Assembly (NCBI RefSeq): GCF_902459465.1
Contig: NC_047073.1
Coordinates: 12,648,001-12,712,000, forward strand
Length of the DNA: 64,000 nucleotides
Direction: 5' to 3'
DNA from: Asterias rubens
Lineage: Eukaryota
Positions 38,987 through 63,463 of the stretch are shown one piece after another; positions within the stretch are counted from its first letter, which is position 1; each line of letters begins with the position of its first letter. The translations under genes were made by a program, and so were the position numbers. Under the pieces are notes generated by a model. It saw only the letters and a list, made by a program, of their open reading frames with translations, was not told the DNA's origin and ran no database searches.

Positions 38987-39180
38987 ACTGATATTACGGA
39001 TTCAGGAACCCAGTATTAGTGTCGCACCTACTCACAACAACATAATGGTAGGGGTTAATCAATTGGACAATCTTTAATGGGAGTACATTTATTGTTGCAC
39101 TAGCCAAGGGTTTTATTTGAGCAATTTAACAAAATTTAAATACCAACTATAATTGTTTACCATAGAATTGAATTTGAGCA

Positions 39181-41569: not shown

Positions 41570-41886
41570 TTTGTGAGCAGTTTATATCAAATAACAAACC
41601 TGTGAAAATTTAGGCTCAATCGGTCATCGGAGTCGGGAGAAAATAACGGGAAAACACACCCTCGTATCCGCGCGTTTCGCCGTGTCATGACATGTGTTTT
41701 CAAGAAATCCGTAATTCTCGACAACGAGAATTGATATTGTTTTACTGTTTTCTCAAAAAGTAAAGCATTTCATGGAATAATATTTCAAGAGAAGTCTTTC
41801 ACCACTACCTTCTGTAAACCCTGTTAGTTATTTGTAAATCTGTGAACTTTTTTGTGTCTGTACCGAAAGGGTCCAATGGCTTTTAA
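41570..41886. mobile_element. Kolobok-type MITE family C, left end missing
   Basis: Ends ccgaaagggtccaatggct; body nearly identical to 57671-57998. Confidence 0.75.
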
Positions 41887-42021
41887 ATTAACTCATCTCA
41901 CTCAATCGTGTACTTGTTAGTGTGGTCTTCTGCGTAACAATGCTATATGCGTGACATGGTATGATGGAACACTATACTGCTATTTTATCCCATTATAGCA
42001 GAACTTACATTTTGTTACCTG

Positions 42022-42250
42022 GGCCCAATTTCATAGAAGTGCTAAGCACAATAACTTGCTCAGCATGACTTTTCTTCATTAATAAAAACAAGATTACCAA
42101 CCAAGTTTCCGTTTGTTGAATATTGCTGGTTACTGATTCAGCTGCTGAAAGTCACGTGAAAATTAGTTGGCAATCCTGTTTTTATCAAGGCAAACATTTC
42201 ATGCTGAGCACATTTTTGTGTTGAGCAGCTCTATGAAAATGGTGCGCCCC
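42022..42250. mobile_element. PIF/Harbinger-like MITE, diverged copy
   Basis: ggcccaatttcatag...agcagctctatgaaaatgg. Confidence 0.7.
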
Positions 42251-43508
42251 GGTGCACCCCTTGTTGAATAGCCTAAACAAAAATTAATGTAGACACGCCC
42301 TCTAGATCAAAGTAAGCAAAGATTCCTGCATCATCGTCGGGTTTATCGAGCAGCTTCATTTAACCATCTCGTGTTAATTGTTCTGTTCAATTCAATATAT
42401 AAATTTATTTCAATGTTGATCTATAGATTAAAACATCTCAGAAATTCTACCTTTACGCGTATTACAATAATGTGTCGTTTCAATATTTGGCTTCACAAAT
42501 GAGAAAAAATGGCTCAAAACCAAGAAATCTAAGTCAACGAATTGTTCTTGAAGAGTGAGGTGACTTTTACCAACCTACAAGAGATTCAAATTTGACAAAG
42601 ACATCAGTTATAGCATGCATTAGAAAGATCGTAAATGTTAAACTTGTCGTATTAGTATAGATTTGATCAAATGGATAATGACTTTGTCTTCTATTCTGAT
42701 GTTAGAACAGTGTTAACACGTACACAACGAGTTAAAACAAATTGTCACCAATTTGTTGTTCTTCTTGTTTGTCAAAGGATTCGTAGGAATTTATGATTAA
42801 TTTATTCACCACAATAATATTAATATTGCAAAGAAATATATTTTTGTTTTGTTTCTGTGTTCGCTGCCGGCCCTGCGCTGCGTACTGATTTGTTTGTATT
42901 ACTCAGCCTTTCTATGTACAAATTATCTGATGGGCTTGTGTCGACCTCCCTTTTTGACAAGGAAGATGATGTCAGGTAGGTCACATAACTTCTGATCTAC
43001 TAACAATATTGAGATTAGATCATTCCTCTCATTTCATTAATTGGTCAAGTCATACGCCTTTCAAAAGGCAAGATGTTTACCAAAAAATTTTGTGGTAAAT
43101 TGTATTCCCTTATTCCCGGTTCGTTTTGCTGTCAATTTTAATTCTGGGAGCAACAAATTGTAATAAAATGTATCCCGTTTCATGCTAAATGAACGTTTGC
43201 ATGCGTATTCATGTATAAATCTGGTTCAATGTCTTAGCTAGACTAATTGAGGAACCATGGTATTCTAATGATGTGCAATTCAAAAGCAACATTTCCGGAA
43301 TTTATGTTTTGATAACATCTTTTAAAAAAACAACATACACCAGGATTGCCTGCCCTTTTCTCAAAGGAGGAACTATCCAAGTTGTTTAACAACGATTAAG
43401 CAAATTTGGCAGATGGTCAACTTTCACAATCTTCATCTAAAAAATAATAATTATCCTTCATTGGTCAACAATAAATTCCATAAGTTCCTTATTCAATTGT
43501 ATGAGTAA

Positions 43509-43514
43509 TATAAA
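43509..43514 (+). promoter_or_regulatory. Possible TATA box of gene 2
   Basis: TATAAA about 70 nt upstream of the ATG. The motif is common in AT-rich DNA, and a ttacag just before the ATG could instead be an acceptor for an upstream UTR exon. Confidence 0.25.
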
Positions 43515-43582
43515 TGATGTTCCTTCTCAGAGTGGATTACAATAGGCAAGAGGGAGCAGTCAGTGTCGCCTTACAGACAGTC

Positions 43583-43643
43583 ATGGCGGGACAACTTCAT
43601 GTGAAACTCAAGCTGCTTTTCATATTGTTAGGAGTGTTTGAAG
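43583..43643 (+). CDS. Gene 2 first coding exon: signal peptide
   Basis: acagtcATGG context; MAGQLHVKLKLLFILLGVFE then G|gtatag phase-1 donor, splicing in frame to G-VSA-VVDF; plausible cleavage after VSA. Confidence 0.8.
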
Positions 43644-46600
43644 GTATAGTCCTTTCTTTATAGTTTGTTGTTTACGCTTTCTTGAATGTCATGACGTCGC
43701 CATGATATTAAAAAGGAAACAATCGTAAACTTAAATAAAAGGGTTAAATCTTAGCTGCAAGTTTTAATAGTCACTACTTACTGTTTTATATATATATAAA
43801 AAGTATTTAAGTTGTTTTCCAAATGTTTTTATTTTTATTTTTACATAAAATATTGCAAGAGGAAAACAGTGCACTTTTGGTGCACTTTTAAAAATGTTGC
43901 TGACATGTATAACTGTAAGCAACATTTAACATAATGCGTTAAGTGTTAGCATTTACATTGTGTGGTATATGAGCACGCAGGGGGGCCCTGATTGTATCTT
44001 TGTGCGAAACCCTTGGTGGAGATTGAGTGGGGGGGAGATTCACAAGAACGTTTTTTGGTTTAAGCATGTCCTGAGTGGCTCGTTGACAAGCTCTACATTC
44101 AAATAAATATTTACTTACATACTATGTTAAAAGATCTTGGATTTGGTTTTATTCTCGGAAGCTTTTGGATTTTGACATTGTATGACCAGGGATGACTCTC
44201 CATCTGTGCGCTTGATAACCGTTGTTTGTATTCTGTGTTGTTAGTGGCTCTGTGTGTGCGTCTTGATTTACATATACTCTTGTCCAAAGTAGGCACATTG
44301 GTTGCACACCTTAGTTTAAAGGAACATTACAGTATCGGTTTTGCTACAAACAAAAAAACAGTTATGGCAGTGTCAGCACTTTATGTAATACACCATACAT
44401 AAACTGACAAACCTGAAGAAGTTTGAGATCGATCGGCCATCTGGGTCACCAGAAAATAGTAACAGACGATTACACGTAAATTTGCATGGCAATGATGCAA
44501 AACAAAAATAATAATAACACGCTCACTGAGCGATAAACTCCAAACGCATAGCTAAATTTATTTCTCATCAAATTATGACATTTCAGTGAGAAATATTTCA
44601 AGGCGGCAACACGTTAAGCATTCGTTAATGGAACCTTTTTTGTTCCTTGAAACTAGCCGAAATGGGGATAAAACAAGAACAAAGTTCAAGTTACCCTGCC
44701 CTGCCCCAAACAAACGTTGTTGTAGGCACATTGTTTTCGAGCACACAGAATTATCGCAAATGTATAAAATATGGCATGTCAAACAATTTAAAGCTTAATA
44801 TAAATCGAATTTATAAAAAAAAAAAAAAAAAAAAAAACATAAAAAAAAAATGCAACCGAGTGTTTCATACGCGGGATTTTTGGTTAACCTTGCCCTCGTG
44901 AATGGGTCTTTATTTTCTTCCGAACAAAACGAAACGTTTGATTCTTGGACGGTTATGAGCTTTTTTTGTAACTTGGCATTTTTGTCCATATTTACACTGC
45001 TTGAAAATGTCCATTGTTGACATGAGGAATGCAAAAGTGTTGAAATCGACGTATTTATGTGTTGTTAAGTACGCACTGTAACAGCAGAACATAAATGTTC
45101 GAGACCGTCCAAGTTGATATCGAAATTTGAATATCGTATATTGCTAAACATCTTGCATTTCTAGCTTCTAGAATAGTTACATACAAAAATATATTGTATG
45201 AGCTATTTACAAGCCAGGGCACTATACATAAGGTTCATTTTTCTGCCCGTCGGATTCCTTTCCAGACTGTCTTCTCTAACCGGGAGAACACGAATACATC
45301 TTCAATATTGTATACAATAACACGTTTTCAATAACACGGTTTTGAATTAGAAAGACTTGTTTAGAACGTTCTCCTTCTGTTGTCCACTCTTTGGAGGCTT
45401 TTTACTTGTGTTCTAAAATTAAATAATCAAATTCACACTACTTTCGCTCTTAAGAATTTATACCAAAATGCACATTTTGTTCATCACTGCTTTCTATGTA
45501 GTTTATTTATTCATAGGCAGTGGACACTATTGGTAATTACTTTAAAAAATCATCATTATAAAACCTTTCTTGATTACGAGTAATGGGGAGAGGTTGATAA
45601 AATAAACTTTCTGAGAAACAGCTCCCTCTGAAGTGACGTAGTTTTCGAGAAAGAAGTCATTTTTCACGAATTCGATTTCGAGACCTCAGATTTAGAATTT
45701 GAGGTCTCGAAATCAAGCATCTGAAAGCACACAACTTTGTTTGACCATGGTGCGACAAGGGTGTTTTTTCTTTCATTATTATCTCGCAACTTTGACATAA
45801 CAACCGAATGAGCTCAAATTTTCAGAGGTTTGTTATTATATGTTTATGTTGAGATACATTAAGTGAGAAGACTGGTCTTTGACAATTACAACACGTGCTC
45901 AGTGGCTTTAACTATTAATGGTTTGATCTGTGTCACTAAACAACAATTTTTTCAAAATACAAATAACAATATTGCATTAAAATAATAGTACACATTTTGA
46001 AAACTATTGTTGCTTTTTGGTCGCGGTTTAACCTTGTTCTAATCGTACAAATGTTGTTGTGCATAACAACAACAAAATATAGTTTGTAGTGCCGTTTTTT
46101 TTTTTTTTTATAAAACCTCGCAATACAAGCAGTTTACAAAATCCATGTTTAAAGGGAGGGTACACGTTTGGTAATTGTCAAAGACCAGTCTTTTTCACAA
46201 GCCTGTGAAAATTTGGGCTCAATTGGTCATTGAAAATGCGAGAAAATATATGATAGAAAAAAACACCCTTGTTGGACGAACTTGTGTGCTTTCAGATAAG
46301 AATAAAATACCTCTAGCTAGAAGTATTTTATTATTTTAGTGAGAAATTACCTCTTTCTCAAAAAATACGTTACTTCAGTGGGAGTCGTTTCCCACAATGT
46401 TTTATATTATTAACATCTCCCCAATGTTCGTTACCAAGTCAGTTTTTAAGTTAATATTTGTTTTGAGTAATTACCAAACATGTACTTTCCCTCAAACTTG
46501 TTTTCAGGCGTGTCAGCAGTGGTAGACTTTACCAGCGTGACAGCTTCTGGCCCTTCGAGTCCGTATAACAACCTACACGTATTCATTGCAAGTTATTTGG

Positions 46601-49600
46601 TGACTGGTGATGAGCCCACAGCAACCAAAAAAGAAGAGCTTGGTTTAACACGATTCATACGGACGGGTACAGGTACCGACATGACTGGGTGGACGAATTC
46701 TTCTGATTCTTTACCATCGACATTGCCAGACAATGTAAAGAGTAAGATATATAAAGTTCCCAATGCCACTACAGGAAGCGTCGGTGTGTTCGAATGGAGG
46801 TATGGCTCTAACACAGTGAAAACGATACGGATGAGATCCACAGGTGAGTGATTCAAATAAACAAAACATATAATGATTTATAATAAAAGTTGTGTCCTGG
46901 CCAGCAAAACTTTGCCTTCAAAATAAGGCATACTATTTACATCGATAATTAAGGTTAATAGTTGTTAATAGCACAATTCATATGAAATCAACCTGCACAA
47001 ACTGGGTTGTCATTGTTTAAATGAAAAAGGGAATCAACATTAACATCAATATTGTCTTAAATGTTGTTCTAACACATGACGTCAATTTTAACACCCCAGA
47101 TTTGCAGGGCAGGAACATAAAATCAAAATTATTATAATGAAACCACAGTTTTAAGTGATCATCCTTAACACGATTCTAATGCGACAAAACAGACATTCTG
47201 GACATTGTCATAATAATTGTTTAAGAACGTTGCGAAGTAAGCATTGTGAAGGCCAATGTTCTAGTGCAAATGTTGGCATATATTATATTTTACGTAAACG
47301 ATTTCCAACAATAACCAAGTTTCTGCGTGTTCGGTGTGACTAACTAAGTGCTCAATAGCTTCGATACTTCAACTATAAATCTCAAATCCGAGACTTGAAC
47401 AGGTACTTTTTAACGAGAATGCTATTTAAACTTATTTATGGCGTGTTTGTTTACCATTTAAATGTGATATTTATATTGATTGTAGGCATACACTTGTATT
47501 TTTTGTAATTGTCGATCGAGAATTTAGGAAGTTATTCCGGTGCCCTCCCTCGTATAAATTACATACCCAGTTTTAACGTTTTATGTTTGGCATTGTATGG
47601 ATCATGATTGTATCCATGAATGTTTTGTTTATTATCGGTAGCGTCGAGTGTGAACAATTTGCGATTTCAAACGAAGACTTTATTTCAACCGCTAATAATA
47701 TTTCGCTAAAAGACACAGGACATATTTGGTAATATTGTCAAAGACCAGTCAATTTGAGCTAAATTGGTCGTCGAAGTTTCGAGATAATAGTGGAAGAAAA
47801 AATAACCTTGTCAACGTTGTATACTAACAGCAGCTCTCCATTGCTCATTACCAAGTAAGTTATTATGGCAGCATTTATATTGAGTAGTTACCAATAGTGT
47901 CCTGTGCCTTTAAGTAATTTTGTGTGCTCGATTTTTTTTCTTCTGCTCTAGCAATAAAATATTTCTTGCACTCGAACTAACTGTTTGAATTCGAAGTAAT
48001 TATTCCGTGTGCACAAAGATTCACCAGTTCGTGAAATTTGGGTAGTTTCTCGATTTGTAGACGTTAGTTCATTAAAATGTCCCACAATTGCTAAAATTAG
48101 GGGTATATCTTCCATTTTGCCTTGGAAATAAATTACTTTATTGACATTCAAGTGGTGTATTTTGATCGTCAACGTTGGTTTCATAACAGAAAAACCCGAA
48201 CACAATTACTTTACAATATTTCTCTCTTAAACATTCTCCCACACGCAAATACTTACATAAATGAATAGACAATGTCCTACTCTAAAATAGTGTAGTTGGT
48301 TTGTGCCTAATTTTGTGTAGTCCAGTCAGAGTGCAAAATATGCTGACGCTAATTAAACGCATCGTAACGTAAAAGGCCGCCATGATTGTACATGTAATTC
48401 CCGTATTCTGATTGGTGGAGACGGGTAGTGTGGGTGGCCCGGATGTCGCAAGAATCAATTTTAATCATTTTCCGATTGGTCACCGGTCAGAATCAGAATG
48501 AACCTTGTTTAAACGCTTTTATCGTGTATCTTTGTTGTCTTGTTCAATACTGAAACAAGCAACCTTAATAATTTCGTTCGCTTCTGAATCGAAACAATCC
48601 TCATACCTAATTACGGTATTGCAGGCTTTGTACATAATTATTCTCAAAACTTGATGATGTTGGATCCAAAAGTTTTCCAGAGAATTGGAGTGAATGCGTC
48701 AATCATGTATAACGCTTTAAATCAATATTGTGTGTGTCATTATCAGCTGCAACAACTCGAGGGACTTGCCACTGCTGGGTAGAACACCTTCATCTTATTT
48801 AATTGCAAAATGTCATTTTCAGCTTTTGTTCAATTGTTTTTAGTCAACATAAAATGTGAACTTTCCACAAAAAAAAACATAAAGAAAGTACAAATTTAAA
48901 GCTTGGAAATAATGTGTACTTTTCGCGAAAACGTCTTAAAACTTAAAAGTTTATGCTAAATTTCTCAGACGGGTAATTAAAAGAAATATTTGTAAAGCTT
49001 CCATTTTTTTTTCTTTGCATAATATGTCTCGGCGGCACCCTAGCATCTGTATAATATGTAGCCCTCAATTAAAGTAAACTGTCAAGTAACCCTCAAGTAA
49101 AGTAAAACATGTAGCCCTACAGTACGCAAACTAAACTATCGACCTAAATAAAACAAAATAAAATATGCAATTTTTCGTCTAAAACAAAATGAATCACTAA
49201 AGCACTAAATGGTCATTATACACTAGGTTTAAATTAGTATAAGCCACCAAACAAGTAAGAGTCCAATCAATTATAGACACGAAGTTTGTTTCCATTGTAG
49301 TAACTGGGTATATAGTTATCCTAAAAACGTAATGTTATTGTGCCATTAACAACGTGCCGTTAATGACAATGTGAGCTTAATCATTCCGTCTGTTTTTTTT
49401 TTTTTTTTGGGGGGGGGGGGGCGCTTAATTTGACATCCACAGCATCCCTTGTACCAGCCTTCGTAAGCCGTACTGTCAACATCGGCGATGATGTTGCTCT
49501 GACCGTTACCAGAAACACAGAGGATATAACGATTTCAAAAAGCAAATGGAAGAAAGACAACGGTATTACGATGAACGCGGACATCCTGGACTTCAACATA

Positions 49601-52600
49601 GCCAATGCTAGTACCAACGACAGTGGTATTTATGAGTGCCATTATAAACATGAACGTGGCAAAGGAAACCAGGCGCTACTGAGATTGATTGTTAGAGGTA
49701 AGCAAAATGATTCATTTATTTATTTATAATGAAAAAGAATATGTTGTTTCACATCTCTCCCATTCTACATAATCCCAACTGGATACCCGTTTATTTCATA
49801 ATACAATATGAGATCATTCTTCTGACATTCAAGGCTCTCCATGGACTAGCCCGTACCTACATACAGAGCATGCTTCAGCCCCGTAGTGTCAGGCCGAGTC
49901 TGAGGTCATCGGGCAGCATGCTTTATGTTCCTCTGACCTGTTTATCCAGCTATGTATGGCCTTTAGTAACATTTCAACCAATCTCTGGAACTCTCTGCCT
50001 CAACATCTCAAGGATACACATGACATCTCACGATTCCAACAATCTCTTAAGACCAATGTCTTCAGATTAGCCTATAAACATGAGTGAAATTGTATTCTTG
50101 TTCTTGACCAGCGCCGTTGAATGTCATACAGATAAAGTGCGCTTTACAAATTATGTTTTATTATCATATTATTATAACTGTCTAGATATGAATACTTTCA
50201 CTTAACTCTGCAATACAATACAGCAGACCAAAACACTGTGCATTAGGCAGTCTATGAAAATAATGGATAATTAACACACACTAATACACTACACAAACGG
50301 GGGTTTAATTGCTGCATAAAATGGACTCTGGGCATCCCCAACACCCTTGAGATGGTCTAGAGATACTAAAACAATTCCCCCATACCATGCTTGCCTGCAG
50401 AGAATCCATCATGTATTCTAAATAAGGCATAGTCCCCACACTAACGACATTGGTCAACGCAAGTCAATGGGGGAAATCTCCATAATACCTTGGACCAGTG
50501 CCAGGGTAAACCAGATGAGCTAGGTTACTCAAACTCTCCATTATGTTTATCAATCGTATAATGGAGGAAGTCAAGAAAAAAACAGCTTCCTACTTTATTA
50601 ATAAGAGGAGTAGATAACAAAAACTGTTGATTTTGTGCCATGAAAACCATGGTTAAACTAGAACCAGACTTCAATGAACATATGTTAGCAACTACTTCTC
50701 TCTAAAACATCAGAGACACAATTAAATAGGTATATGCTCCATCTAACTGCATCCGAAGCCCATTGCGATCACCAGGCCTTGGTCAACGTGCCGTTAGCTT
50801 GAACTGCGAAGGACGGAATTTTTCACAAAGTAAATGCGAATGTTTTATAACTGGGGATTGGTGATAACGTTTAGTCAGCCGTCACCCAAACAAACTCAAG
50901 CTCAAAACACCAAAGGACGATCAGAGACGACAGACACCTGTTTTTTATAAAGACATGTCGTACATTTCTACTAAAAGGTTCAAGCCAAACTATTTGTTTT
51001 ACGTTTCGTTTGTTTTATTATTTTTAATAGATAGTGATTTAATTTGCTAGTAAGCCTATATTTAGTTGCTGCTTACTTTTGTTCGCACTCACTGATTGGT
51101 TTACAGACAATTATATGGGCGCACGACATTGCAAATCCACACAGGTCGACTGCGAATAAATGTCCGCCTAGTGGAAACACGTTGGCGTAAGAATAGTTAT
51201 ATTGTCCCCCTCTGTTTTCGTTTAGAATGGCAACTAATGCCAATCGTCTTAACTTCACTGTAGTTATAAGTTATAACTTGAGGCCGGTAACAATCTGTAG
51301 CAGAATATTCCCGGCAGTCTAAGAAGCTCAGGCAAATCATCGATTGCTGACTATTCCTGTGTCATCGTAAAGTTGATCGACCAGCTTGCGGCTTAAATAT
51401 GCGGAATGGAGGGTTAAATATAAAAAAGAACAAGTATTTGTATGCTGGTTTGAATGCTAACGTATGCCATGTTTTTCTTTGTGAAAACAGGATGCCCACA
51501 ACATAAATATGACCTAACGGATTGTAGCAACAAGTGTCCGAGATGTCTTAATGGTGGCGTTTGTTCTGACGTTGATGGTGACTGCATTTGTCCACCTGGG
51601 TTTGGTGGTAAAATTTGTGGAGAAGGTGAGCAGAAAAAATATGAACATTTTATAGCACTTTACTTAAAACAAAACTAATACACCCTAGTGAAACAAAGTT
51701 TCTAAATAAAAATCTTGCAACCTGAAAGGCTGAGCCATGTCTATACTATGTTGGCATTTAGGCATAGGTACCTATATATTAACCTTGGTAAATATACCGT
51801 TCATATGTTTCAGACCATATTAAGTCATATTATGGTATTTTGCTAATCAACCTGGGCCCAATTTCATAGAGCTGCTGAGCACAACAATTTGCTTAGCTTG
51901 AAATTTCTTCCTTGATAAAAACAGGTTTACCAACCAAATTTCCATGTGATTTTCAGGATAGGCAAATACAAGCTGAATACCAGACAAGCACTATGCAACA
52001 AATGGAAATTTGGCTGGTAATCCTGTTTTTATCTGGGAAGAAATTTCATGCTTAGCAGATTTTTGTGCTTAGCAGCTCTATGAAATTGGGCCCTGGTTGG
52101 AGACCACACTAAACTGCATGCTAAAGTTGTGATTTTTGGAAGAGTTGTTGGAGCCACGTGCCACCAATCTGGTTGTTTATTACCACCCCCCCAAAAGACC
52201 GCGTGATTACACTGTTCTTAAGAAGTATCATCCATATCATGCACCACAGTAATTAATTAGGTGTTCATCACGTTGCGTTCAACTGATCACCGTGTTTTTG
52301 TAATAAACAAAAAACTCTATGTCTAGTTGTTGTTGGTATCATGATGCATTAGTAAAAGGACCGAACCGCTTTGGCCAAAAAGGGAGCCTCCGCTGCGATG
52401 CTGTTGGGTTGCCTCACGATGGTTCTACCTGCAAAGGAATGCTGTTCTGTTTACCGGATCCATACGGATGCAGCTGTGCCGCTGGGTACCAGGGACTTGA
52501 GTGCAAGACAGGTACACTTTAAACTCAAACAATCAGAAAACATCACCAAACAATGTGCCATTGATAAAATAACATATTCATAGGCTAAACGCAAACAATA

Positions 52601-55600
52601 TTTTCAAAAGCCAAGAACAAAATACAGCTTCCAAAGAAAACATAAATGCACAAAGAGTACACCTATCCCTTCCCCCACTGTCTTGAACGACTATGTTAGA
52701 TCCAACCACGCGAACTTTATTACCATGGGTTTAGAATCCCTATAGAAACAAAATTTCATTCGGTGTACGTTTTCTGGGCAAAAAGCTTCAATGTACCAGG
52801 AGTTGATAAACAGACAGCCAGCGTTCGGTTTGTTTTTAGCACTTTGCTTTGGTTCTTTCATAACTGGTTCAGATTGTCACGATGGAACTTACGGTGCCAA
52901 CTGTGACCAGAACTGTCACTGTGCCGACAGTGCGTCATGTGATGGAACAACGGGTGAATGTGATGGAGACTGTGCAGCGGGATACAAAGGAGACAACTGC
53001 CAAGGTACGGATTATAGCTGGAAACTGGACATTTAAGAAACACCGAATTTGATATTCAGTGTCTACATTAATAATCATCATGTATCTTTTCCTATTTCCC
53101 AGTACAATGTACCTCTGGTGAATTTGGTTTGAACTGTAACCAGACTTGTCACTGTGCGGACGTGGAATCATGTAATGGAACAACGGGTCGGTGTATCGGA
53201 GACTGTGCATCGGGATACAAAGGAGATAACTGTCAAGGTACGGAAAAATGCCTTCATCTGAATCTTGAAATGTAAGGAAGTTCAATTTTACAATGTTCTC
53301 TTTTCTGCTTTTCAGTGTGTATCGATGGCAATTTCGGTGTCAACTGTGCCCAGAACTGTCACTGTGCTGTTACTGGACCAAATAATTATAGGTGTCAACT
53401 AAAGGATTGTGACGGTGCTTTTCCATTTTAGGTTAAATGCTAAGGTTTTCTTAAACGGTAAATTATGTTATACATGTACATAAACATGTGTTGTGTGCAA
53501 CTATACACCAACATAATGGACATTTTAATTGAAAAGACGATGGCATTTTTTAGATATTGACGAAATTATGGAGCAAGTGTAATAAGAAAACACAATCACA
53601 GAAGTGCTACTGACATTAAACGCTTCTCAGATTCCAATTGCAGGGAATAGCAACTGATCTTTTTACATAACATACATTACTTTGATGTGAAACGTTCTCA
53701 AAATGTTTTATGTTATCCAAAGTTGATAAGTTGATGTATGAAGCTTACCGAAAGCTGTATATTGCCAGAGTGATTACCAAACGTACGCATTCCCTTTATA
53801 AGTTGTTATAATGGTGTTTTTGATTCAACAGAGCAATGTCTTCTCTACGAATATAAGCTATCGTGCAGTACGACTTGTACAATATTAGGTAGGTTGCATT
53901 CATCTGCTGAACCCAGATATGTAGGCTTGTTCCCAACTCGATCTTCCCTATCTGTGATTCTTTTATGATGAAATTTAGATACTCGTTGTTAATCTTTAAA
54001 TCAAAAAATGGTCTGATAAATTTTCTTCCCAATGTGTCTTCCCTATTTTAAACTTTTTTGGGGTCACATATTTGCTGATGTTTTTTGTTTGTTAGAGCAA
54101 AATATTATGACTAACTGTTTATATCCTGTTTATATCCTGCATTGCCTTTTGCATTATTCTTATTGTAGCTCAGTCCTGTCTCTCTGCATGGATGTATTAA
54201 AGTGAGGCGTGGTCTCCAAGGTCAATGTAATCATGACATTTAAGGGATTAGTTCCATGGTTCATTTTCACCCATTGAGCAGTGACTTTGTGAAGTGAGTT
54301 GTATACGCTCTTCACGATCTTTTATACACTCGGAATGTTCCAATTGATTTCAGATCCCAACATGATACCCCGACGTCTCAGTGTGTCTTCTTATTCTGCT
54401 GACGATTCATTCACTCACACATTATCATGGGAACCAGTAATCTGCCCAGCAAAAGGCTTCAGTATTGTGAACTACGTATATAAGGTCCTTGATGGACGTG
54501 GGAGTGAAGTTGAACCTGTTGAAATCGAGGGTACTTCTGTCAACCTTCACTTGACTAATTGCACAAGATATCAACTCGAAGTTGCTGCACGAACGAGTAA
54601 AGGCATCGGGATTTACAGTGAAGAAATCTACACGACTAAATCAACGGGTAAATAATCTCTTAAATAAGTCAGTTCGGTATATGTTATAATTATTGTGTGT
54701 TTAGTTGTGAGTTTAAGTTTGCATTTAACCATAGTTTCATATTAATCATTGCTGACACAATGGCGTGCATTTAGCCCTCGGGGCGCTGGCAGTTGTTTAT
54801 GGACAAGTAGCAGTAGGCCTACTGAGATACCTTGTGATCTACAAGCCTGATTATGATACGGTACACGGCAAAACACGAGACAAGACGCTTGATGTGCAAA
54901 TAATTATTGTTTGTGTAAGTTCCGGCACAATTTTCAAAAAAATACAAAGTGAAATATAAGTGAGCAGCATTAAACTTAATATTACTACAATTTGCAACTT
55001 GCAACTAAGCGCAAAATGTGGCTATAGTTTCATACATCTTCTACTCAGGTCAGTAATAATGTTTCAAAATAAAGAAGATTAACGTCGTAGCATGAAATTG
55101 TCATGGGTGTTATTATAGCCTTCTTTTCTTGTATTTGTTTGTTTTTGAAGTTCCCAATCCTGTAGCAAGCGTAACCGTGTCTCCAACAAGCCATAATCAA
55201 CTTGCAGTATCATGGGATACTCCTCTTACCGACAATCAGAGTCCTTGTCATGCCACTGAATACCTGGTGACATATGACCTTATACAACTTGAGCAGTGTG
55301 AGGTGGCAAGTAGAGGTATTGAAACATTGACCACAACCAACACTACACTCACAATTGAGAGACTTGAAGCGTACTCAACATACTGGGTGACTGTTACATC
55401 GAAAAACCAAGCTGGAAGTAGTACCCCCGTCTCCACAACTATGACGACAAAAGAAACAAGTAAGTAAGAGTCACTTTTTGTGCTTAACTGCTCAACAACA
55501 AGAGCAAACTAACCATCTTCAAATCAACCGTATAATCAATTATATTGTATGGCTCGGATACATGGACAGTCACCCGGGAACTTGAAGAGAAACTGGATGG

Positions 55601-58600
55601 GTGCTATACAAAACTCATGCGGAAACGCTTCAACGTTCACTGGAGTCAACACATGACAGATACAGAAATGTACGGTAAGGAGCCAAAACTATCCACCAAA
55701 ATACAACAGCATCGTCTGAGACTAGCAGGGCATTCATACAGAAGCACCAGAGAACCTGTCTCTCAGCCTATGACCTGGTCACCGAAACATGGAAGGAGAA
55801 ACAGGGGAAGACAAATGGCTCAGCTATACAGATGTAGTTGCTAGGGACATCGGGGTGCTTCCAGCTGATCTTCCCAACCTAATGAGACCTAGAGAGGGAT
55901 GGGCGAGCCTCAACATGATTCCGACCTCGGTCGACTAGAGACAGAGTGAGAGAGAGAGAGAGACGGGGGGGGGGGGGGGTTAGAGAAGGGTCGATGTTAC
56001 TATGGAAAGTTGTGTTTTACTTTGCTTCTATTGTGCAGAGTTTAGTTGATCTGTAAGGACTGTACCATTATTCTATAGAACTCCGCTTGTAGAGTTTTTT
56101 TTGTCTTATGATATTTTAAATTAAATCGTTTACTGTGGTTTCATAACAGAACCAGAAGCACCAACTGTAATTGTCGACTCGACATCGACAGATTACATCG
56201 AGTTCGCATGGGAGCTTCCATGTGGAAGAACGGGTGGCAACATAACAGAGTACCGATACAAGTATAAAAAAGCAACAGACAATAAGTTCATGCAGACTAC
56301 CACAACAACGGATACACGTATAAGGATAACTTCCTTAACGCCATGCACTTCATATGTATTTCAAGTGACAGCTTTGAACAGCATTGGAAAGGGAACGTGG
56401 TCCAATGAGACTAGGCAAAATACAACACAAAAGGGTAATTTATGGTATATCCAACGTCATAACAGCATAACAATAATTAATAAAGCATTATTGCAATGCA
56501 AAACTATTTTTTGTATTACCAATAATGACGTTATTATAAAAAAAACCGTGTTTATTGTGCGAGCTCTTTACATTCAAAGATTGAGTAGCTGTTTGTTCAA
56601 AAAAGTGATGTCATCATTACCGCAAAGGGATGCTAGCATTTTTAAAAGTTCTACCTTCTCATTTCCCTCATTCACACAATGCCACCAACAAAATTGTTCG
56701 AATAATTATTTAGGGGAATTCAAGTCGTAGAAAAATAACTTTTGTTGCTTAATTAATAAAACAGGTATACAGGTGTTAACCAATATAAATTTTGTTAATA
56801 GATTGTTAAAAGTCTTACTGGATCTTTGGTACTTTTGGTGAATAATTGTGTGTTGCATTGCATTTTATACAGAACCTTTGGGTGTCAGGAATTTAAGCGT
56901 TGAACCAGGCAGCCAAGGTATACTGGTTGCGTCTTGGGAAGACAGAGGAGTTGGCCATACAAATAATCCGTGCCTCGCTTCTAACTACCTTGTGACCTAT
57001 GAACTCATCAATCTGGATCAATGTGGGGAGGGTGATCAATCTGATGGCTCACTGAGCACTACAGATACAACCATCACTGTCGAGGGTCTTCACCCATACT
57101 CTACATACAAAATAAGTGTAACATCGAGAAATGAAGCTGGCGATGGACCCACGAAATCCAAATCAGCGATTACAACAGAAAGAAGTAAGTAAAATACCTG
57201 CTTGTTGTTGGCCATGTTTAGTGCATCTATTCCGTCAGCTCGTCGTAAGAGAGACGCAATGACACCTTTGTTGTTGAAAGATCTGCACATTTTCCGACTC
57301 CTCCTTATTATAAATGTGTTAATGGTCTCTTCCAACCAGGTTTCGGGATTGCGCCTACATTCAATAGCAGTAGAGTGACATCAACTAGCATCCGCATCAC
57401 GTGGAACCCCATCCCATGTGGTAGTAGAGGAGTTCGTATCACTGGTTACGGCGTGAGTTTGTCTCGACAAAACGGGCAGAGCAAGCGAGACAACCTACAG
57501 CAAGTGCCAAACACTTCTGTATCTGCACAGTTTGACCAGTTATTCCACTGTACAACATACATTATCACCGTAACTACTACACGACTTAGGGGTGAAGGGA
57601 CATCGTTTAGCCGTGAAATAGAAACTGACTCAATTGGTACGTATGGAATGGGCAGTTTAAAAACTTATGTTTAAAGCCATTGGACCCTTTCGGTAAACAC
57701 TATTGTCCAAGGCCCAGCCTTCGTGTATCACAATTTCTATATCAAATAACAAACCTGTGAAAATTTAGGCTCAATCGGTCATCGGAGTCTGGAGAAAATA
57801 ACGGGAAAACCCACCCGTGTATCCGCGCGTTTCGCCGTGTCATGACATGTGTTTAAAATAAATCCGTAATTCTCGCTAACGAGAATTGATATTGTTTTAC
57901 TGTTTTCTCAAAAAGTGAAGCATTTCATGGAATAATATTTCAAGGGAAGTCTTTCACCACTACCTTCTGTAAATCCTGTAAGTTAATCCTGTAAGTTATG
58001 GGAGCTTCCCTGTGGAAGAACAGGTGGCAACATAACGGAGTACCGATACAAGTATAAAACAGAAGCAGACAATGACCTCATCCACCTTAACACAACAACG
58101 GATAAACGTATAAGGATAACTTTCTTGACGCCATGCACTTCATATGTATTTCAAGTGAGAGCTATCAACAGCATTGGAAGAGGACCGTGGTCCAATGAGA
58201 CTAGGCAAAATACATTACAAAAGGGTAATACATGTTATATACAACGTCATAACATCATAACTATAATTAATTAATCATTATTGCAATGCAAAACTATTTA
58301 TTTTATTACCAGTATGACGTTATTATAAACAACCTATTCTGTTTATTGTGCAAGCTCTTTACATTCAAAGATTGAGTAGCTGTTTGTTCAAAAAAGTGAT
58401 GTCATCATTACCGCAAAGGGATGCTAGCATTTTTAAAAGTTCTACCTTCTCATTTCCCTCATTCACACAATGCCACCAACAAAATTGTTCGAATAATTAT
58501 TTAGGGGAATTCAAGTCGTAGAAAAATAACTTTTGTTGCTTAATTAATAAAACAGGTATACAGGTGTTAACCAATATAAATTTTGTTAATAGATTGTTAA

Positions 58601-61600
58601 AAGTCTTACTGGATCTTTGGTACTTTTGGTGATTAATTGTGTGTTGCATTGCATTTTATACAGAACCTTTGGGTGTCAAGAATTTAAGCGTTGAACCAGG
58701 CAGCCAAGGTATACTGGTTGCGTCTTGGAAAGACAGAGGAGTTGGCCATAAAAATAAAACGTGCCTTGCTTCTAGTTATTATGTGACCTATGAACTCATC
58801 AATCTGGATCAATGTGGGGAGGGTGATCAATCTGATGGCTCATTGAACACTACAGACACAACAACCACTGTCGAGGGTCTTCATCCATACTCTACGTACA
58901 AGATAAGTGTAACATCGAGAAATGAAGCTGGCGATGGCCCCACGAAATCCAAATCAGCGACTACAGCAGAAAGAAGTAAGTCAAATACTAAATGCTTGTT
59001 GATGTGCCCATGTTTAGTGTATCTATTCCGTCAGCTCGTCGTAAGAGAGACGCAATGACACCATTGTTGTTGAAAGATCTGCACATTTTCCGACTCCTCC
59101 TTACTATAAATGTGATAATGGTCTCTTCCAACCAGGTCTCGGGATTGCGCCTACATTTAATAGAAGTGAAGTGACTGCTAGTAGCATCAGCATCACTTGG
59201 AACCCCATCCCATGTGGCAGCAGAGGAGGCAGTATCACAGGCTACATCTCAAAGTTGTTTTTAAAAGGAAATATCCAAATTCAAGATGACGTGATTGGTG
59301 AGAGTACGTCTGTACAGTTTGACGAGTTGGCTCCATGTACAAACTACACCATCGCTGTAACTACAGACGGAGCAAGCATAGGCACATCATTTGAGCGGGA
59401 AGAGACCACATTTACTGTCGGTATGTACATATAAATATAGAACTGTTTACCAAAATGAGTCTCAAACAAAAGGGAGTATAGGACCATGTAAAAAAGTATT
59501 AAAACAAAAAACGCATTACAAACAAAGCTTCACTGCATGGCACTTGGGGAAAATGGCTGAGACGCGTACTTAACTATTGAAGATATAATTAATAAAGCAT
59601 TATTGCAATGCAAAACTATTTTTTGTATTACCAATAATGACGTTATTATAAAAAAACCGTGTTTATTGTGCGAGCTCTTTACATTCAAAGATTGAGTAGC
59701 TGTTTGTTCAAAAAAGTGATGTCATCATTACCGCAAAGGGATGCTAGCATTTTTAAAAGTTCTACCTTCTCATTTCCCTCATTCACACAATGCCACCAAC
59801 AAAATTGTTCGAATAATTATTTAGGGGAATTCAAGTCGTAAAAAAATAACTTTTGTTGCTTAATTAATAAAACAGGTATACAGGTGTTAACCAATATAAA
59901 TTTTGTTAATAGATTGTTAAAAGTCTTACTGGATCTTTGGTACTTTTGGTGATTAATTGTGTGTTGCATTGCATTTTATACAGAACCTTTGGGTGTCAAG
60001 AATTTAAGCGTTGAACCAGGCAGCCAAGGTATACTGGTTGCGTCTTGGAAAGACAGAGGAGTTGGCCATAAAAATAAAACGTGCCTTGCTTCTAGTTATT
60101 ATGTGACCTATGAACTCATCAATCTGGATCAATGTGGGGAGGGTGATCAATCTGATGGCTCATTGAACACTACAGACACAACAACCACTGTCGAGGGTCT
60201 TCATCCATACTCTACGTACAAGATAAGTGTAACATCGAGAAATGAAGCTGGCGATGGCCCCACGAAATCCAAATCAGCGACTACAGCAGAAAGAAGTAAG
60301 TCAAATACTTAATGCTTGTTGATGTGCCCATGTTTAGTGTATCTATTCCGTCAGCTCGTCGTAAGAGAGACGCAATGACACCATTGTTGTTGAAAGATCT
60401 GCACATTTTCCGACTCCTCCTTACTATAAATGTGATAATGGTCTCTTCCAACCAGGTCTCGGGATTGCGCCTACATTTAATAGAAGTGAAGTGACTGCCA
60501 GTAGCATCAGCATCACTTGGAACCCCATCCCATGTGGCAGCAGAGGAGGCAGTATCACAGGCTACATCTCAAAGTTGTTTTTAAAAGGAAACATCCAAAT
60601 TCAAGATGACGTGATTGGTGAGAGTACGTCTGTACAGTTTGACGAGTTGGCTCCATGTACAAACTACACCATCGCTGTAACTACAGACGGAGCAAGCATA
60701 GGCACATCATTTGAGCGGGAAGAGACCACATATACTGTCGGTATGTACATATAAATATAGAACTGTTTACCAAAATGAGTCTCAAACAAAAGGGAGTAAA
60801 GGACCATGTAAAAAGTATTAAAACAAAAAACGCATTACAAACAAAGCTTCACTGCATGGCACTTGGGGAAAATGGCTGAGACGCGTACTTAACTATTGAA
60901 GATATAATTACTACCGGTTGCATGTTGAGTCCGATCCCCAAAACATTTCATCACTTTACAAAAAAATAAAATGCATATTATGGTTCGTATTAAGGCACCC
61001 CGAAGAGGAGCGACAGGCAGAGCTTCTTGATTATGTCAATAACACTGGAACAGGGCAATGTTCGCTGCTTCGTTTTTCTCCAAGGGATGCAATATTATAC
61101 ATGTATATTGAAACGTATAACGACGTCACATCTTTTTTACTAGCTCCAGGAAGAGTGACCGTGCTACGAGCAAACCCAACCCCAGACGCAACCCAGATCC
61201 ATGTTACTTGGCTGAACCCCAACGCCAACAACTGCCCAGTTTCTAAGTACAAAGTAGAATATCAACTTACGAACAGGTAGGAATTGTATGATCTAAGTAA
61301 ACAAACAAACACCAACGCTGTATTATAGGTTGTATCATGTTTAAATAAATTTTATATATGCATGTGTTTTCCCATCTTCTTATTTTCTTACTTCTTTATT
61401 TGCTTGTTTTACTGAAATTAGTTCGTGTCTATTTTTAACTATATAAATATGCGTTTGTTTTTCTGTTGTTCTTTTTTTCTCAGATGTGGATTTTTTCATG
61501 ATTTAGTCAAAAGTACTTTCAAGTTAATACAAATTAACTTCCTTGAATGAAAGTACATGTTGTTTCTTAGTGAACTGTTTTACCAGTTGCAATCAAATAT

Positions 61601-63463
61601 ACCGATGAATAGCAATAGTGATTTGTGTTAGTATATGCATAGTTTGACAGCTTCAACTCGTCATAATTTTGTCTCGGTCGATGGGACGCCATTTATAATA
61701 ATAATAATAATATTGTACAGCTTTTATATAGCGCTTCACACAAACGACCTCGAAGCGCTTTTAATACAAGAAAAACAACAATACAAAAGAAAAACTTCAT
61801 TACTTCATTACTTCAAAATATGTAACACTTACCAAAAGGCCACCTCGTTTTACTGTGACAGTAATAATTTCTCTAAATTGATTGATTTTCTGTAAAAGGG
61901 ACCAGTGTGACAGAGACGTAACCCAGAATCGTGAGCAGTGGCTTGATGGCTCCCAGTCACCAACAACCATAACTGGATTAGACCCTCACTCCACGTATCG
62001 TGTATACGTCACGCCTTCTAACAGTGCAGGAGCAGGGGAAGAAGTATCAGTGACAGTCAATACCAACAATACTGGTAGGTTTTTAAAACGGGTTTGTATG
62101 TTTTTGTTATAGTAAAGATTTGGGTTAATGAAGCTTCAATCATGAAAATAACTCTCTTTCTTTCTTTGAAAAAACGCCAAGGTTAGTAAAAAATTGTGGC
62201 AAAAGGGATGCAGAGGGGCAAGTGAAGGGGTAAGCTTTATCAAAAAATGTGTAGGGCACCTGAGCTTGCAGCTCTGTCTGAAATTGGCGCATTATAAATC
62301 TTTGTTCATATTATTATCTTCATTTATCAAGGGAAAAAATTGTTCACGGTATAGTGTGTAAATAATTTAATAAACACGGTTATGAAAGCATGTTACACGG
62401 GATAACAAATAAATTGAACGTTTTAAAAAACGTTACTTGAATGTATTGTCCGTAATTTCGAATGTATTGACGGTAATTATTCAAGTTTGTATTAATGTTT
62501 TTTTTTTTTTTTTTTCATTTTAGCACCTTCCGGTCCTCCAAGAGATTTGAAGTTTTTTGATGTTACCAACCAAACCATATCATTCTCATGGAAACGACCA
62601 GTGTGTGGTCAGCGTAACGGAATCATAACCCAGTATCATTACAGACTCATCGACAGTGAAGAGGAAGTACTCGAGGAAGATACAACCTCTAGTACTGGGA
62701 CAGAATTCACTGGCCTCGTTCCTTTTATGTCATACAATTTGTCAGTATCTGCAGAGAATCAGTTTGCTTCAGGACCAGTTGCTTCAATTACGACTCGAAC
62801 ACAAGAAGGAAGTAAGCAAAACAATGTCGTTTAATTTCTATCAGCCTATAATAACACTACACAAAGACGATAATTGTTTTTACTATTTTCAGTCACCAAC
62901 TGTGTAATATACAACTTGTGTACATAGCTTACTATTTTTTCTCTTATAAGTCTAGATGTAACAATAAATAACATCTCCTCCGACTGCCCCTTCCCAAACA
63001 TTCAGTTTATTCTCAGAATGTGAAGACATGATTTCCCCCAACATACCTGACCCCAAGAAACACACAAACACAAATTAATTACACAACGATGATGGCTTTG
63101 TCTTAATAGTTGAACCATTCTGGTGTACTTCATGTTTGCTTGAATATTTCTCTCACATATTATTATAGTGTGTGTTGCATATTAGTATAGTAGTACTGGA
63201 AGTATTTTTAACACGTCATTTCAGTTCCTCCGCCCCCAAGCAAAGTCATTTTTTCAGTTACGAGGAGCGACAGGATCACCGTAGCGTGGAACGCTCCTAG
63301 TCCTCCTCATGGCACCATCATCAGCTACGAGATCCGCTATTGGAAGACGGGGTCAGGGAACCAGACATCGGATGATACAGTGAAAATCACAAAGCAGCTT
63401 GCTAGTCGGGGCCAGACGAAGAGGATCTCTAGTTTGGAAGGGAGTATCAGTTACTCAGTCCAG
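43583..63463 (+). CDS. Gene 2: tandem paralog of gene 1 (Tie-like ectodomain RPTP), 3'-partial
   Basis: Signal exon 43583-43643; Ig1 46508-46843; Ig2 49443-49697; EGF 51491-51625, 52353-52511, 52873-53004, 53103-53237; FN3 54354-54647, 55151-55459, 56150-56434, 56873-57184, 57340-57636, 58664-58975, 59136-59420, 59984-60295, 60456-60740, 61144-61276 + 61899-62074, 62524-62811, 63225-63463. TM and PTP exons would lie beyond the window (inferred). Confidence 0.88.
44316..44640. mobile_element. Kolobok-type MITE family B
   Basis: TTAA|AGGAACATTACAG start and shared core; right end degenerate. Confidence 0.7.
45515..45911. mobile_element. Kolobok-type MITE family A (gene 2 intron 1)
   Basis: aggcagtggacactattggtaatt start; degenerate right TIR ending ctttaa. 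Confidence 0.8.
46149..46496. mobile_element. Kolobok-type MITE related to family A, inserted just upstream of the gene 2 Ig1 acceptor
   Basis: Gene 1 has the empty site gtttaacttgttttcag; gene 2 has TTAA|agggagggtacacgtttggtaatt...ttaccaaacatgtactttccct|caaa cttgttttcag. Confidence 0.85.
47706..47913. mobile_element. Family A MITE, orthologous to 1414-1620
   Basis: Same deleted structure at the same intronic position in both paralogs. Confidence 0.7.
49745..50175 (+). mobile_element. 3' fragment of an L2/CR1-group LINE
   Basis: Translates as NWIPV...ILLTFKALHGLA..Y...L.P...R.SLRSS..LYVP, then tggaactctctgcc (WNSLP); ends gcgctttacaaat plus a (tta)-rich tail. Confidence 0.8.
51855..52092. 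mobile_element. PIF/Harbinger-like MITE (238 bp)
   Basis: TIR GGCCCAATTTCATAGAGCTGCT / AGCAGCTCTATGAAATTGGGCC with 3-bp CTG duplication; diverged copy at about 42022-42250. Confidence 0.75.
53316..53431 (+). pseudogene. Gene 2 truncated EGF exon (acceptor kept, donor deleted)
   Basis: First 52 nt match gene 1 exon 9047-9098, then join sequence matching the gene 1 intron from 9746; read-through stops at TAG 53429-53431. Confidence 0.8.
55473..55985 (+). mobile_element. 5'-truncated RTE-clade LINE in a gene 2 intron
   Basis: ORF 55545-55844 YGSDTWT...LDGCYTKL.R...W..H.T...RLRLAGH...W.PKHG.RNRGR; (GA)n/G tail; absent from gene 1 intron at 11733; candidate TSD aagagtc/aagggtc. Confidence 0.85.
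57671..57998. mobile_element. Kolobok-type MITE family C, right end deleted
   Basis: TTAA|AGCCATTGGACCCTTTCGG start; body stops at a 13-bp tandem duplication and joins an FN3 exon interior. Confidence 0.8.
57998..58224 (+). pseudogene. Gene 2 FN3 pseudo-exon lacking its 5' end and acceptor
   Basis: Copy of the exon at 56150-56434 starting internally at (A)TGG GAG CTT CC; donor intact at 58225; fused directly to a truncated MITE. Confidence 0.85.
58270..60909 (+). repeat. 1320-bp tandem duplication carrying two FN3 exons
   Basis: Exons 58664/59984 and 59136/60456 are exactly 1320 nt apart and nearly identical; junction near 59589. Confidence 0.92.
61695..61765 (-). mobile_element. 3' tail of an L2-related LINE/SINE
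   Basis: Minus strand reads aagcgcttcgag...gtgaagcgctatataaaag...tattattattatt; part of an insert absent from gene 1. Confidence 0.6.

Follow-up and report, generated by a model that had tools for sequence, protein, structure and literature searches.

A receptor phosphatase gene of Asterias rubens, a starfish, as a probable mosaic of a tandem array of Tie-headed kinases and phosphatases

Introduction

By which events does a large cell-surface receptor come to differ from its immediate neighbor in the number and kind of its extracellular modules? This question is raised by a stretch of 64,000 nucleotides from the genome of the starfish Asterias rubens (contig C13; referred to here as the window), in which two receptor-type protein tyrosine phosphatase (RPTP) genes, gene 1 and gene 2, follow each other. 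The proteins combine a long ectodomain of immunoglobulin (Ig), EGF and fibronectin type III (FN3) modules with a transmembrane (TM) segment and two protein tyrosine phosphatase (PTP) domains, D1 and D2. A previous inspection of the window (the sequence-only reading) had described gene 2 as a tandem paralog with a remodelled ectodomain, and had attributed the remodelling to unequal crossing-over that generates receptors of different heights and specificities.

Here, we read gene 2 as a reshuffled paralog, a mosaic of a kinase/phosphatase array in which a kinase and a phosphatase with the same head possibly represent matched on and off receptors. We assign this reading a probability of about 0.7. 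The genomic account (anatomy, mosaicism, breakpoints, and array), which is drawn from sequence comparisons, is very probably correct, while a paired function of the kinase and phosphatase genes is a tentative proposal. The sequence-only reading overlooked the mix of Tie-type kinases and phosphatases on one common ectodomain. Receptor kinases and receptor phosphatases are usually regarded as distinct families whose ectodomains are unrelated; in this array, both are found on one ectodomain that appears to be still exchanged.

Results

An Array of Kinases and Phosphatases on a Common Ectodomain Scaffold

We examined 80 kb upstream and 60 kb downstream of the window and counted the paralogs, as the sequence-only reading had proposed. 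The array spans approximately 12.50-12.76 Mb on contig C13, entirely on the plus strand, with Tie-type kinases coming first and three receptor phosphatases following (Table 1). At least three, and probably four, Tie-type kinase genes (among them kinases Z, A, and B) lie upstream, and a third phosphatase gene (gene 3) lies downstream. N-terminal exons of the gene 2 type occur four times in the whole 417.6-Mb genome, all of them in tandem at this locus. Kinases A and B possess no PTP exons; their FN3 modules are followed by a TM exon and a complete set of tyrosine-kinase exons (GxGxFGxV, AAIK, HRDLAA/SRN, DFG, and SDVWS), and their TM and kinase reading frames are open and end in a stop codon. 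A Tie-type kinase is not part of genes 1-3, which carry PTP domains instead, and is present only in the neighbors Z, A, and B.

All members of the array, except for kinase Z with its unseen 5' part, are built on a common scaffold: a signal peptide and a Tie-like head (Ig1-Ig2-EGF1-EGF2) come first, EGF repeats and then FN3 modules follow in variable numbers, and an FN3 module of the PTPRU type stands next to the membrane. The number of EGF repeats amounts to one in kinase A, four in kinase B, six in gene 1, two plus a relic in gene 2, and one in gene 3, and that of FN3 modules to four, about 10, 12, 14, and about four, respectively. In the protein of gene 3, residues 104-313 align to Tie2 residues 76-279 (PDB 2GY5; E = 8e-31), an alignment that covers the end of Ig1 (where the end of the Ig1-like domain aligns to that of Tie2 Ig1), Ig2, EGF1, and EGF2. 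The EGF2 module of gene 2 is 83% identical to that of gene 3, and the head of gene 1 (P0124) matches a mammalian Tie2. The kinase domain of an ortholog from the sister species A. amurensis has Tie2 as its closest natural solved structure (E ~8e-80 versus ~1e-65 to 1e-68 for RET, PDGFR, and FGFR). A canonical Tie ortholog is encoded elsewhere in the A. rubens genome (XP_033637070.1).

Matches to the Tie-type EGF2 exon and to PTP exons further upstream, at 12.36-12.49 Mb, suggest that the array has more members; the part of the cluster at 12.36-12.57 Mb is known from match coordinates only. A match to a PTP D1-like exon at C13:12,427,784, outside of the window, is interrupted by three stop codons and may mark a decayed cluster member.

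Gene 2 Resembles Different Neighbors in Different Segments

We compared gene 2, in windows of 500 bp, with kinases A and B and with gene 1. Its closest relative changes along its length (Table 1): the promoter with exons 1-2 and the membrane-proximal and PTP-encoding part fall to gene 1, the Ig2-EGF1-EGF2 segment to kinase A, and two segments of the FN zone to kinase B. In the first of these, gene 2 and kinase B have an FN2-FN3 intron of about 690 bp versus 163 bp in gene 1, and it carries a retroelement fragment in both of the former genes that is absent from the latter. Kinase B and gene 1, and likewise kinase A and gene 1, are also linked by blocks of more than 93% identity that are 1.7-3.4 kb long. 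Ectodomain segments of kinases A/B and phosphatases 1/2 reach 82-100% amino acid identity and up to 99.6% DNA identity. Kinase and phosphatase genes thus hold ectodomain sequence in common at less than 1% divergence, a finding most simply explained by interlocus gene conversion or crossover that recurred at different times.

The 22-residue TM segments of genes 1 and 2 are identical, the synonymous divergence (dS) of their FN12/stalk region is only 0.03, and this membrane-proximal region is 98.6% DNA-identical to kinase A as well. These three observations point to the membrane-proximal part as the one most recently homogenised.

Breakpoints and Duplications in the EGF and FN Zones of Gene 2

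The two intact EGF repeats of gene 2 are colinear with the first two of kinase B (91% identity), and a 2.3-kb intron segment that is present in gene 1 and kinase B is absent from the EGF zone of gene 2. The repeats are followed, at 53239-53367, by the tail of an intron and 52 nt from the start of a third repeat. At 53367/53370, the alignment then leaps to the point that corresponds to position 9746 of gene 1, 120 bp past the last EGF repeat of that gene. As the alignments read, this junction is a non-homologous deletion that comprises 647 bp in terms of gene 1 and 417 bp in terms of kinase B. We also considered the first EGF repeat of gene 2 as a hybrid of repeats 1 and 2 of gene 1 and rejected this idea: the repeat is colinear with kinase B, and the extra copy resides in gene 1.

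In the FN zone, a first unit (FN3-FN4-FN5) is followed by a second one that consists of an FN3 relic, FN4', and the first 103 nt of FN5. Within a 93-bp zone (59146-59238), gene 2 aligns equally well to FN5 and FN7 of gene 1, and beyond this zone the exon corresponds to FN7. This dual match marks an in-register crossover between modules of the same type by which FN6 was removed. A tandem duplication of 1,322 bp (58262-59594 versus 59584-60913; 98.4% identity, 22 differences) has added FN4'' and FN5/7''. The alternation of the two FN3 types (A/B) and the reading frame were kept through all events in gene 2. Kinase B lacks FN4 through a 414-bp deletion. The FN5/7 hybrid, the 1,322-bp duplication, and the phase-1 borders establish that sets of exons are repeated in tandem and in frame, with junctions left by recombination. 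Unequal crossing-over, the process to which the sequence-only reading had attributed the remodelling, accordingly finds its counterpart in the FN5xFN7 crossover and the 1,322-bp duplication, but several other events are non-homologous deletions or junctions with relic exons. The idea that changes in copy number generate new specificities has to be modified as well: the main difference that is likely to matter for specificity is the Ig2 head, which belongs to an old lineage (dS 1.3), is common to gene 2 and the neighboring kinase, and did not arise from the copy number of EGF or FN3 modules.

A very abundant repeat coincides exactly with the junction that the older FN duplication left in gene 2 (Table 1); extreme word depth (1e5-1e7, within 57500-58100) was recorded for it in all four sequencing runs, which cover several organisms. 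RNA-like contigs of other organisms end at the exon borders of gene 2 with 5-10% mismatches; they reflect transcription of the family in relatives and not expression of gene 2.

Anatomy of Gene 2 and Its Status as a Paralog

The coding sequences of genes 1 and 2, which bear the same RefSeq name, were rebuilt exon by exon, and the translations equal the database proteins exactly. Gene 2 had been placed about 7 kb behind gene 1 in the same orientation, and 7.1 kb indeed separate the stop codon of gene 1 from the ATG of gene 2 (43583) on the same strand. The ATG lies in a signal-peptide exon that splices in frame to exon 2 at 46508. An exon upstream of gene 1 is 98% identical to it, and homologs are present upstream of kinases A and B and also in gene 3. 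The RefSeq models of genes 1 and 2 lack their signal-peptide exons and begin at internal methionines; that of gene 1 lies about 2.4 kb upstream of the window start. Approximately 3 kb upstream of the two genes are 92-97% identical (43147-46152 versus the region upstream of gene 1).

The modules that the sequence-only reading had counted were found again in the exon tables: two EGF exons in gene 2 versus six in gene 1, and 11 Cys-type FN3 modules (FN1, 2, 3, 4, 5, 4', 5/7', 4'', 5/7'', 8, and 9; 54354-62811) versus nine. Gene 2 has a 52-nt EGF relic and a 5'-truncated FN3 relic besides. Every module border from exon 2 through FN9 is in phase 1-1; FN8, FN10, FN11, and FN12 each contain one internal intron, with outer borders in phase 1. 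Because nearly all modules are phase 1-1 exons, deletion, duplication, or transfer at the scale of exons keeps the frame, and damaged exons can be dropped by skipping. The array makes free use of this latitude, also between kinase and phosphatase genes. The observed anatomy of gene 2 was hence confirmed in every particular, and chance is not at issue for its modules because the gene models are annotated and open.

The prediction of different heights did not hold for the pair itself. Gene 2 has four EGF repeats fewer (~176 aa) and two FN3 modules more (~199 aa) than gene 1, so that the two ectodomains are only about 24 residues apart in net length. Across the wider array, the prediction stands, with model ectodomains ranging from about 680 residues in gene 3 to about 1,800 in genes 1 and 2. 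Length might instead vary mainly at the RNA level, through a CD45-like skipping of phase 1-1 exons to which genomic copy number would be secondary. For such a process speaks that the RefSeq model of gene 1 (XP_033636860.1) omits an EGF exon (6267-6398) that is intact (132 nt, phase 1-1) and flanked by good AG/GT splice sites; this exon may be spliced as an alternative cassette or may have been overlooked in the annotation. We regard RNA-level variation as an unlikely main source, since the argument rests on a single computed model and the genomic differences between the paralogs are large and real in any case.

Gene 2 displays the features of a classical RPTP. Besides the in-frame signal-peptide exon, it encodes a single hydrophobic segment of 22 residues starting at model residue 1799, and Pfam detects Y_phosphatase in two stretches (E = 1.9e-145). 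The HC(X5)R signature and the WPD loop are present in D1 of genes 1, 2, and 3. D2 of gene 2, which reads HCIDGEGCS without the catalytic arginine and has WPE in its loop, is for these reasons probably catalytically inactive. The tandem PTP domains are closest to those of PTPRA, PTPRS, and LAR, with CD45 in ninth place behind chains of PTPRA, PTPRS, PTPRE, LAR, and PTPRG. The RefSeq names suggest membership in the R2A (LAR) or R4 (PTP-alpha) subtype. This assignment was rejected: the ectodomain consists of a Tie-type Ig-Ig-EGF head, EGF repeats, and 14 FN3 modules, R2A receptors possess three Ig domains plus FN3 modules and R4 receptors a short glycosylated ectodomain, and the resemblance to PTPRA, PTPRS, and LAR is limited to the cytoplasmic part.

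Could gene 2 be an artefact of the assembly, either because a haplotype of gene 1 was left uncollapsed or because paralogs were mis-joined into a chimera? Many blocks, introns included, match between genes 1 and 2 at 92-98% identity; they comprise the promoter with the first intron, the entire 3' half, and some of the FN zone. Gene 1 contains an N gap, and the short read unitigs give no independent confirmation of the structure. The similarity is patchy, however. FN10-FN11 are only 82-87% identical, no alignable DNA exists around Ig2/EGF1, where gene 2 matches kinase A, and dS ranges from 0.03 (FN12 and stalk) to 1.3 in Ig2, the most diverged module among the paralogs (dN/dS 0.23). The order of modules differs, the two genes have separate flanking sequences on either side and separate RefSeq models, and the unitigs of run X1, the probable source sample, contain both sets of copy-specific variants of the 1,322-bp duplication. 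Moreover, the independently assembled genome of A. amurensis carries at least four such phosphatase paralogs on one contig. These data largely refute an artefact, which we consider extremely improbable, and they bear out the claim that gene 2 is a true tandem paralog rather than an allele.

It is also very improbable that gene 2 is a duplicate in decay that is turning into a pseudogene. Such a fate could be read into its two relic exons, an intronic retroelement and a repeat insertion, and a RefSeq model without the first exon. However, the coding sequence is open over 2,517 codons with the conserved signal-peptide exon in frame upstream, D1 has kept its catalytic motifs intact, and genes 1 and 2 have identical TM segments. 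In comparison with gene 1, dN/dS amounts to 0.18 for D1 and 0.09 for D2, values which indicate purifying selection on both copies, and to 0.3-0.65 for the FN modules. Judged by its sequence, gene 2 is functional, a tandem paralog within an array whose genes all lie on one strand.

Related Clusters in A. amurensis and Beyond

In A. amurensis, phosphatases on one contig contain EGF-repeat/FN3 modules in the numbers 5/12, 5/12, and 2/16, kinases in the numbers 4/12 and 1/7, and five ectodomain-only models in the range of 2-5/10-13. In the 2/16 model, FN2-FN3 is triplicated, a pair other than the one expanded in gene 2 of A. rubens, and the architecture of gene 2 is absent from all A. amurensis models compared. 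Copy numbers are consequently not fixed across species: EGF and FN3 counts differ among all paralogs and between A. rubens and A. amurensis. For genes 1 and 2, the closest counterpart in A. amurensis changes from module to module between phosphatase, kinase, and ectodomain-only genes, and the tree of FN4 is an unresolved comb with some within-species pairs. The ectodomains of the A. amurensis phosphatase P0011 and the kinase P0013 are 82% identical over about 1,700 residues and one EGF repeat apart.

A whole-library search with the N-terminal exon yielded five matches, one of them an irrelevant low-complexity match, and a separate look-up of contigs that encode the protein of gene 1 found none on record. 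Many echinoderm RefSeq proteins with PTP or kinase tails match the Tie-type head, and a PTP-domain protein of amphioxus (lancelet) also possesses a Tie2-like head (E = 2.6e-48). By these matches, the chimeric architecture is old and widespread; Tie-headed phosphatases sit unnamed in RefSeq for several echinoderms and amphioxus.

Other Features of the Window

The spacer between genes 1 and 2 contains an open stretch of 154 aa that resembles the C-terminal DDE portion of a Tc1/mariner transposase. Introns and spacers of genes 1 and 2 carry, in both orientations, a dispersed repeat of about 390 bp (75-94% identity between copies). Another repeat, of about 240 bp, is found in the spacer and in the EGF1-EGF2 intron of gene 2; its copies match in both orientations and it is therefore internally palindromic (MITE-like). 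A gap of 263 N lies in the gene 1 intron between the FN11 exon and the next exon, and the alignment with kinase A ends at the edge of this gap (Table 1).

Table 1. Features of the window and of its flanks. Positions count from the first nucleotide of the window unless C13 is given; negative values lie upstream of it.
Feature	Position	Strand	Remarks
Window	C13:12,648,001-12,712,000	+	Asterias rubens
Fourth kinase exon	C13:12,504,849		95% identical
Kinase Z	ends at -72790	+	3' part only seen
Kinase A	-63022 to -44628	+
Kinase B	-32017 to -9436	+
Gene 1	last coding base 36459	+	XP_033636860.1; exact protein-to-genome mapping
Gene 1 EGF-repeat exons	6062-6193, 6267-6398, 6496-6627, 9047-9178, 9276-9407, 9495-9626	+	each 132 nt (44 aa)
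Gene 1 Cys-type FN3 modules	10736-17032	+	nine modules
Gene 1 last coding exon	36376-36459	+	stop codon next; exact protein-to-genome map
Gene 2	46681 to ~+84112	+	XP_033636809.1, 2,517 aa; runs past window end; exact mapping
Gene 2 exon 1	43583-43643	+	ATG and signal peptide, phase-1 donor, 61 nt; absent from RefSeq model
Gene 2 exon 2	46508-46843	+	N-terminal Ig1-like domain of Tie-type head, phase 1-1
Gene 2 Ig2 exon	49443-49697	+	aa identity 57% to gene 1, 82% to kinase A
Gene 2 Tie-type EGF1 exon	51491-51625	+
Gene 2 Tie-type EGF2 exon	52353-52511	+	100% aa identical to that of kinase A
Gene 2 intact EGF-repeat exons	52873-53004, 53103-53237	+	132 nt (44 aa), 135 nt (45 aa)
Gene 2 third EGF-repeat relic	53316-53367	+	acceptor and first 52 nt; skipped by RefSeq
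Gene 2 linker exon	53832-53888	+	19 aa
Gene 2 FN1, FN2, FN3	54354-54647, 55151-55459, 56150-56434	+
Gene 2 FN4, FN5	56873-57184, 57340-57636	+
Gene 2 FN3 relic exon	57998-58224	+	without first 58 nt and acceptor, donor kept; skipped in RefSeq
Gene 2 FN4', hybrid FN5/7'	58664-58975, 59136-59420	+
Gene 2 FN4'', hybrid FN5/7''	59984-60295, 60456-60740	+
Gene 2 FN8	61144-61276 and 61899-62074	+
Gene 2 FN9	62524-62811	+
Gene 2 FN10, first exon	63225-63463	+	gene continues outside window to TM, PTP D1, D2
Gene 3	+90157 to +114308		XP_033636810.1, 1,382 aa; third, shorter phosphatase paralog
FN zone unit 1	55986-57657	+	FN3-FN4-FN5
FN zone unit 2	57998-59238	+	FN3 relic, FN4', first 103 nt of FN5
Tandem duplication junction	59585-59591	+	sequence back to intron after FN3
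RTE-like retroelement fragment (reverse-transcriptase tail)	55536-55935	+	FN2-FN3 intron; gene 2 and kinase B, absent from gene 1
Very abundant repeat	57738-58014		unit 1/unit 2 junction; second copy 41583-41856
Painting, promoter and exons 1-2	43.5-48.5 kb		closest to gene 1, 92-96%
Painting, Ig2, EGF1, EGF2	48.5-52.5 kb		closest to kinase A, 85-97%; gene 1 not alignable
Painting, end of FN1, FN2, FN3	54.5-56.5 kb		closest to kinase B, 97-99.6%
Painting, FN5/7'', FN8	60.5-62 kb		closest to kinase B, 98-99%
Painting, FN12, TM, PTP domains	67-84 kb		closest to gene 1, 92-98%
Tc1/mariner-like stretch	40817-41278
Dispersed ~390-bp repeat	3252-3535, 15600-15978, 27604-27969, 30256-30644, 30863-31218, 31806-32194, 34563-34952, 38623-38987, 40167-40556, 45510-45911	both
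Palindromic ~240-bp repeat	42017-42253, 51850-52097
N gap	20559-20821

Discussion

The following events very probably account for the present form of gene 2. The gene has a head segment closest to that of kinase A, and its FN segments that are near-identical to kinase B point to interlocus gene conversion or crossover. An in-register FN5xFN7 crossover, a recent 1.3-kb tandem duplication, and two untidy deletions in the EGF zone have shaped it as well; damaged exons drop out by skipping, and the reading frame is kept. A phosphatase and a kinase with the same head may see the same or related ligands and answer them with opposite outputs (dephosphorylation versus phosphorylation). Such a pair would resemble inhibitory and activating receptors, or VE-PTP opposing Tie2, and the number of FN3 and EGF modules may tune reach or spacing. 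Still more broadly, starfish, and perhaps deuterostomes, might possess enzymatic paired receptors whose exons are swapped by conversion or unequal crossover and whose head and module number diversify as in immune clusters. This generalization is tentative, as is the likeness to immune or allorecognition clusters and to CD45-style exclusion.

A different view of the same events is that gain and loss of modules and patchy conversion are mere by-products of repeated symmetric exons, a neutral churn with neither tuning of reach or specificity nor pairing of kinase and phosphatase. It agrees with this view that several events are untidy and have left relic exons and transposon-filled junctions, that the net ectodomain lengths of genes 1 and 2 are nearly equal, and that dN/dS of the FN modules is relaxed and does not exceed 1. 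On the other hand, the frame and the A/B alternation of the FN3 modules survived every event in gene 2, the PTP domains are strongly constrained, and kinase/phosphatase pairs with near-identical ectodomains recur in the sister species, with Tie-headed phosphatases being present in amphioxus as well. Taken together, we judge neutral churn to be a possible but not a likely explanation, and favor the interpretation of gene 2 as a reshuffled paralog within a kinase/phosphatase array.

Several observations speak against this interpretation and have to be weighed. A kinase-domain search did not find kinases A and B among the annotated A. rubens proteins; these two apparently intact genes (C13:12,584,981-12,638,564) may be unannotated, split, or flagged as pseudogenes. 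Among the short unitigs of the four runs (56100-62099), no piece bridges the junction of the duplication. The patches of near-identity between paralogs could partly stem from short-read polishing of the assembly, a process that cannot have produced structural features such as the shared insertion and indels. Finally, a canonical Tie-2-like kinase and F-like and alpha-like phosphatases were detected by coelomocyte proteomics in A. rubens (PMC13409769), and we rejected these proteins as products of the array on the basis of their accession numbers and lengths (XP_033637070.1, XP_033636339.1, XP_033636369.1). A prediction of a membrane-proximal FN11-FN12 homodimer scored 0.00 and is evidence neither way.

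If the proposed pairing were true, one extracellular cue could be read either as "phosphorylate" or as "dephosphorylate". The array offers a natural system for asking what the ectodomain of a receptor phosphatase is for: does a ligand place the "off" enzyme against the matching "on" enzyme? It is also a clear case of exon-phase symmetry permitting rapid in-frame remodelling. Kinases and phosphatases with similar ectodomains may also occur in choanoflagellates. In the literature, we found no paper that describes Tie-headed phosphatases, kinase and phosphatase receptors with one ectodomain, or mixed arrays of this kind.

Among known systems, Tie1 and Tie2 (TEK), the receptor tyrosine kinases for angiopoietins (fibrinogen-related ligands bound through Ig2), are the closest in the head, which is homologous to the ligand-binding region of Tie2, including an 11-residue motif. 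The EGF repeats of the array resemble the third EGF module of Tie receptors, FN3 modules come next, and kinases A and B are Tie2-like. In contrast to Tie receptors, genes 1-3 encode tandem PTP domains instead of a kinase, have four to 14 FN3 modules versus three, and vary in the number of their EGF repeats; the third Ig domain that follows the EGF modules of Tie receptors was not detected here, and the domain next to the membrane belongs to the PTPRU type. The Tie system has a dedicated receptor phosphatase, VE-PTP (PTPRB), which opposes the Tie2 kinase (PMC2711575). It is an R3-type receptor with an FN3-only ectodomain, a single PTP domain, and no Tie head, whereas the phosphatases of the array carry the D1-D2 tandem.

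The KIR, LILR, SIRP, and Ly49 receptors are encoded by tandem genes with near-identical ectodomains and opposite tails, and their ectodomain exons are moved by gene conversion and unequal crossing-over. The genes of the array are likewise clustered and combine closely similar ectodomains with opposite signalling tails, but their outputs are an intrinsic kinase versus a phosphatase instead of ITAM-adaptor versus ITIM, and their ectodomains are far longer. In-frame tandem duplication of exon sets by unequal recombination is known from the long homologous repeats of CR1 and from kringle IV-2 of LPA. The exon-set duplication in gene 2, in frame and at high identity, is of the same kind; unlike CR1 and LPA, exchange here also takes place between different genes of the array. 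CD45 (PTPRC) has in common with the array phosphatases the Cys-containing FN3 modules, a D1-D2 tandem in which D2 is inactive, and an ectodomain that varies in size, but its size varies through the alternative splicing of mucin-like exons in one gene, and it has no Tie head.

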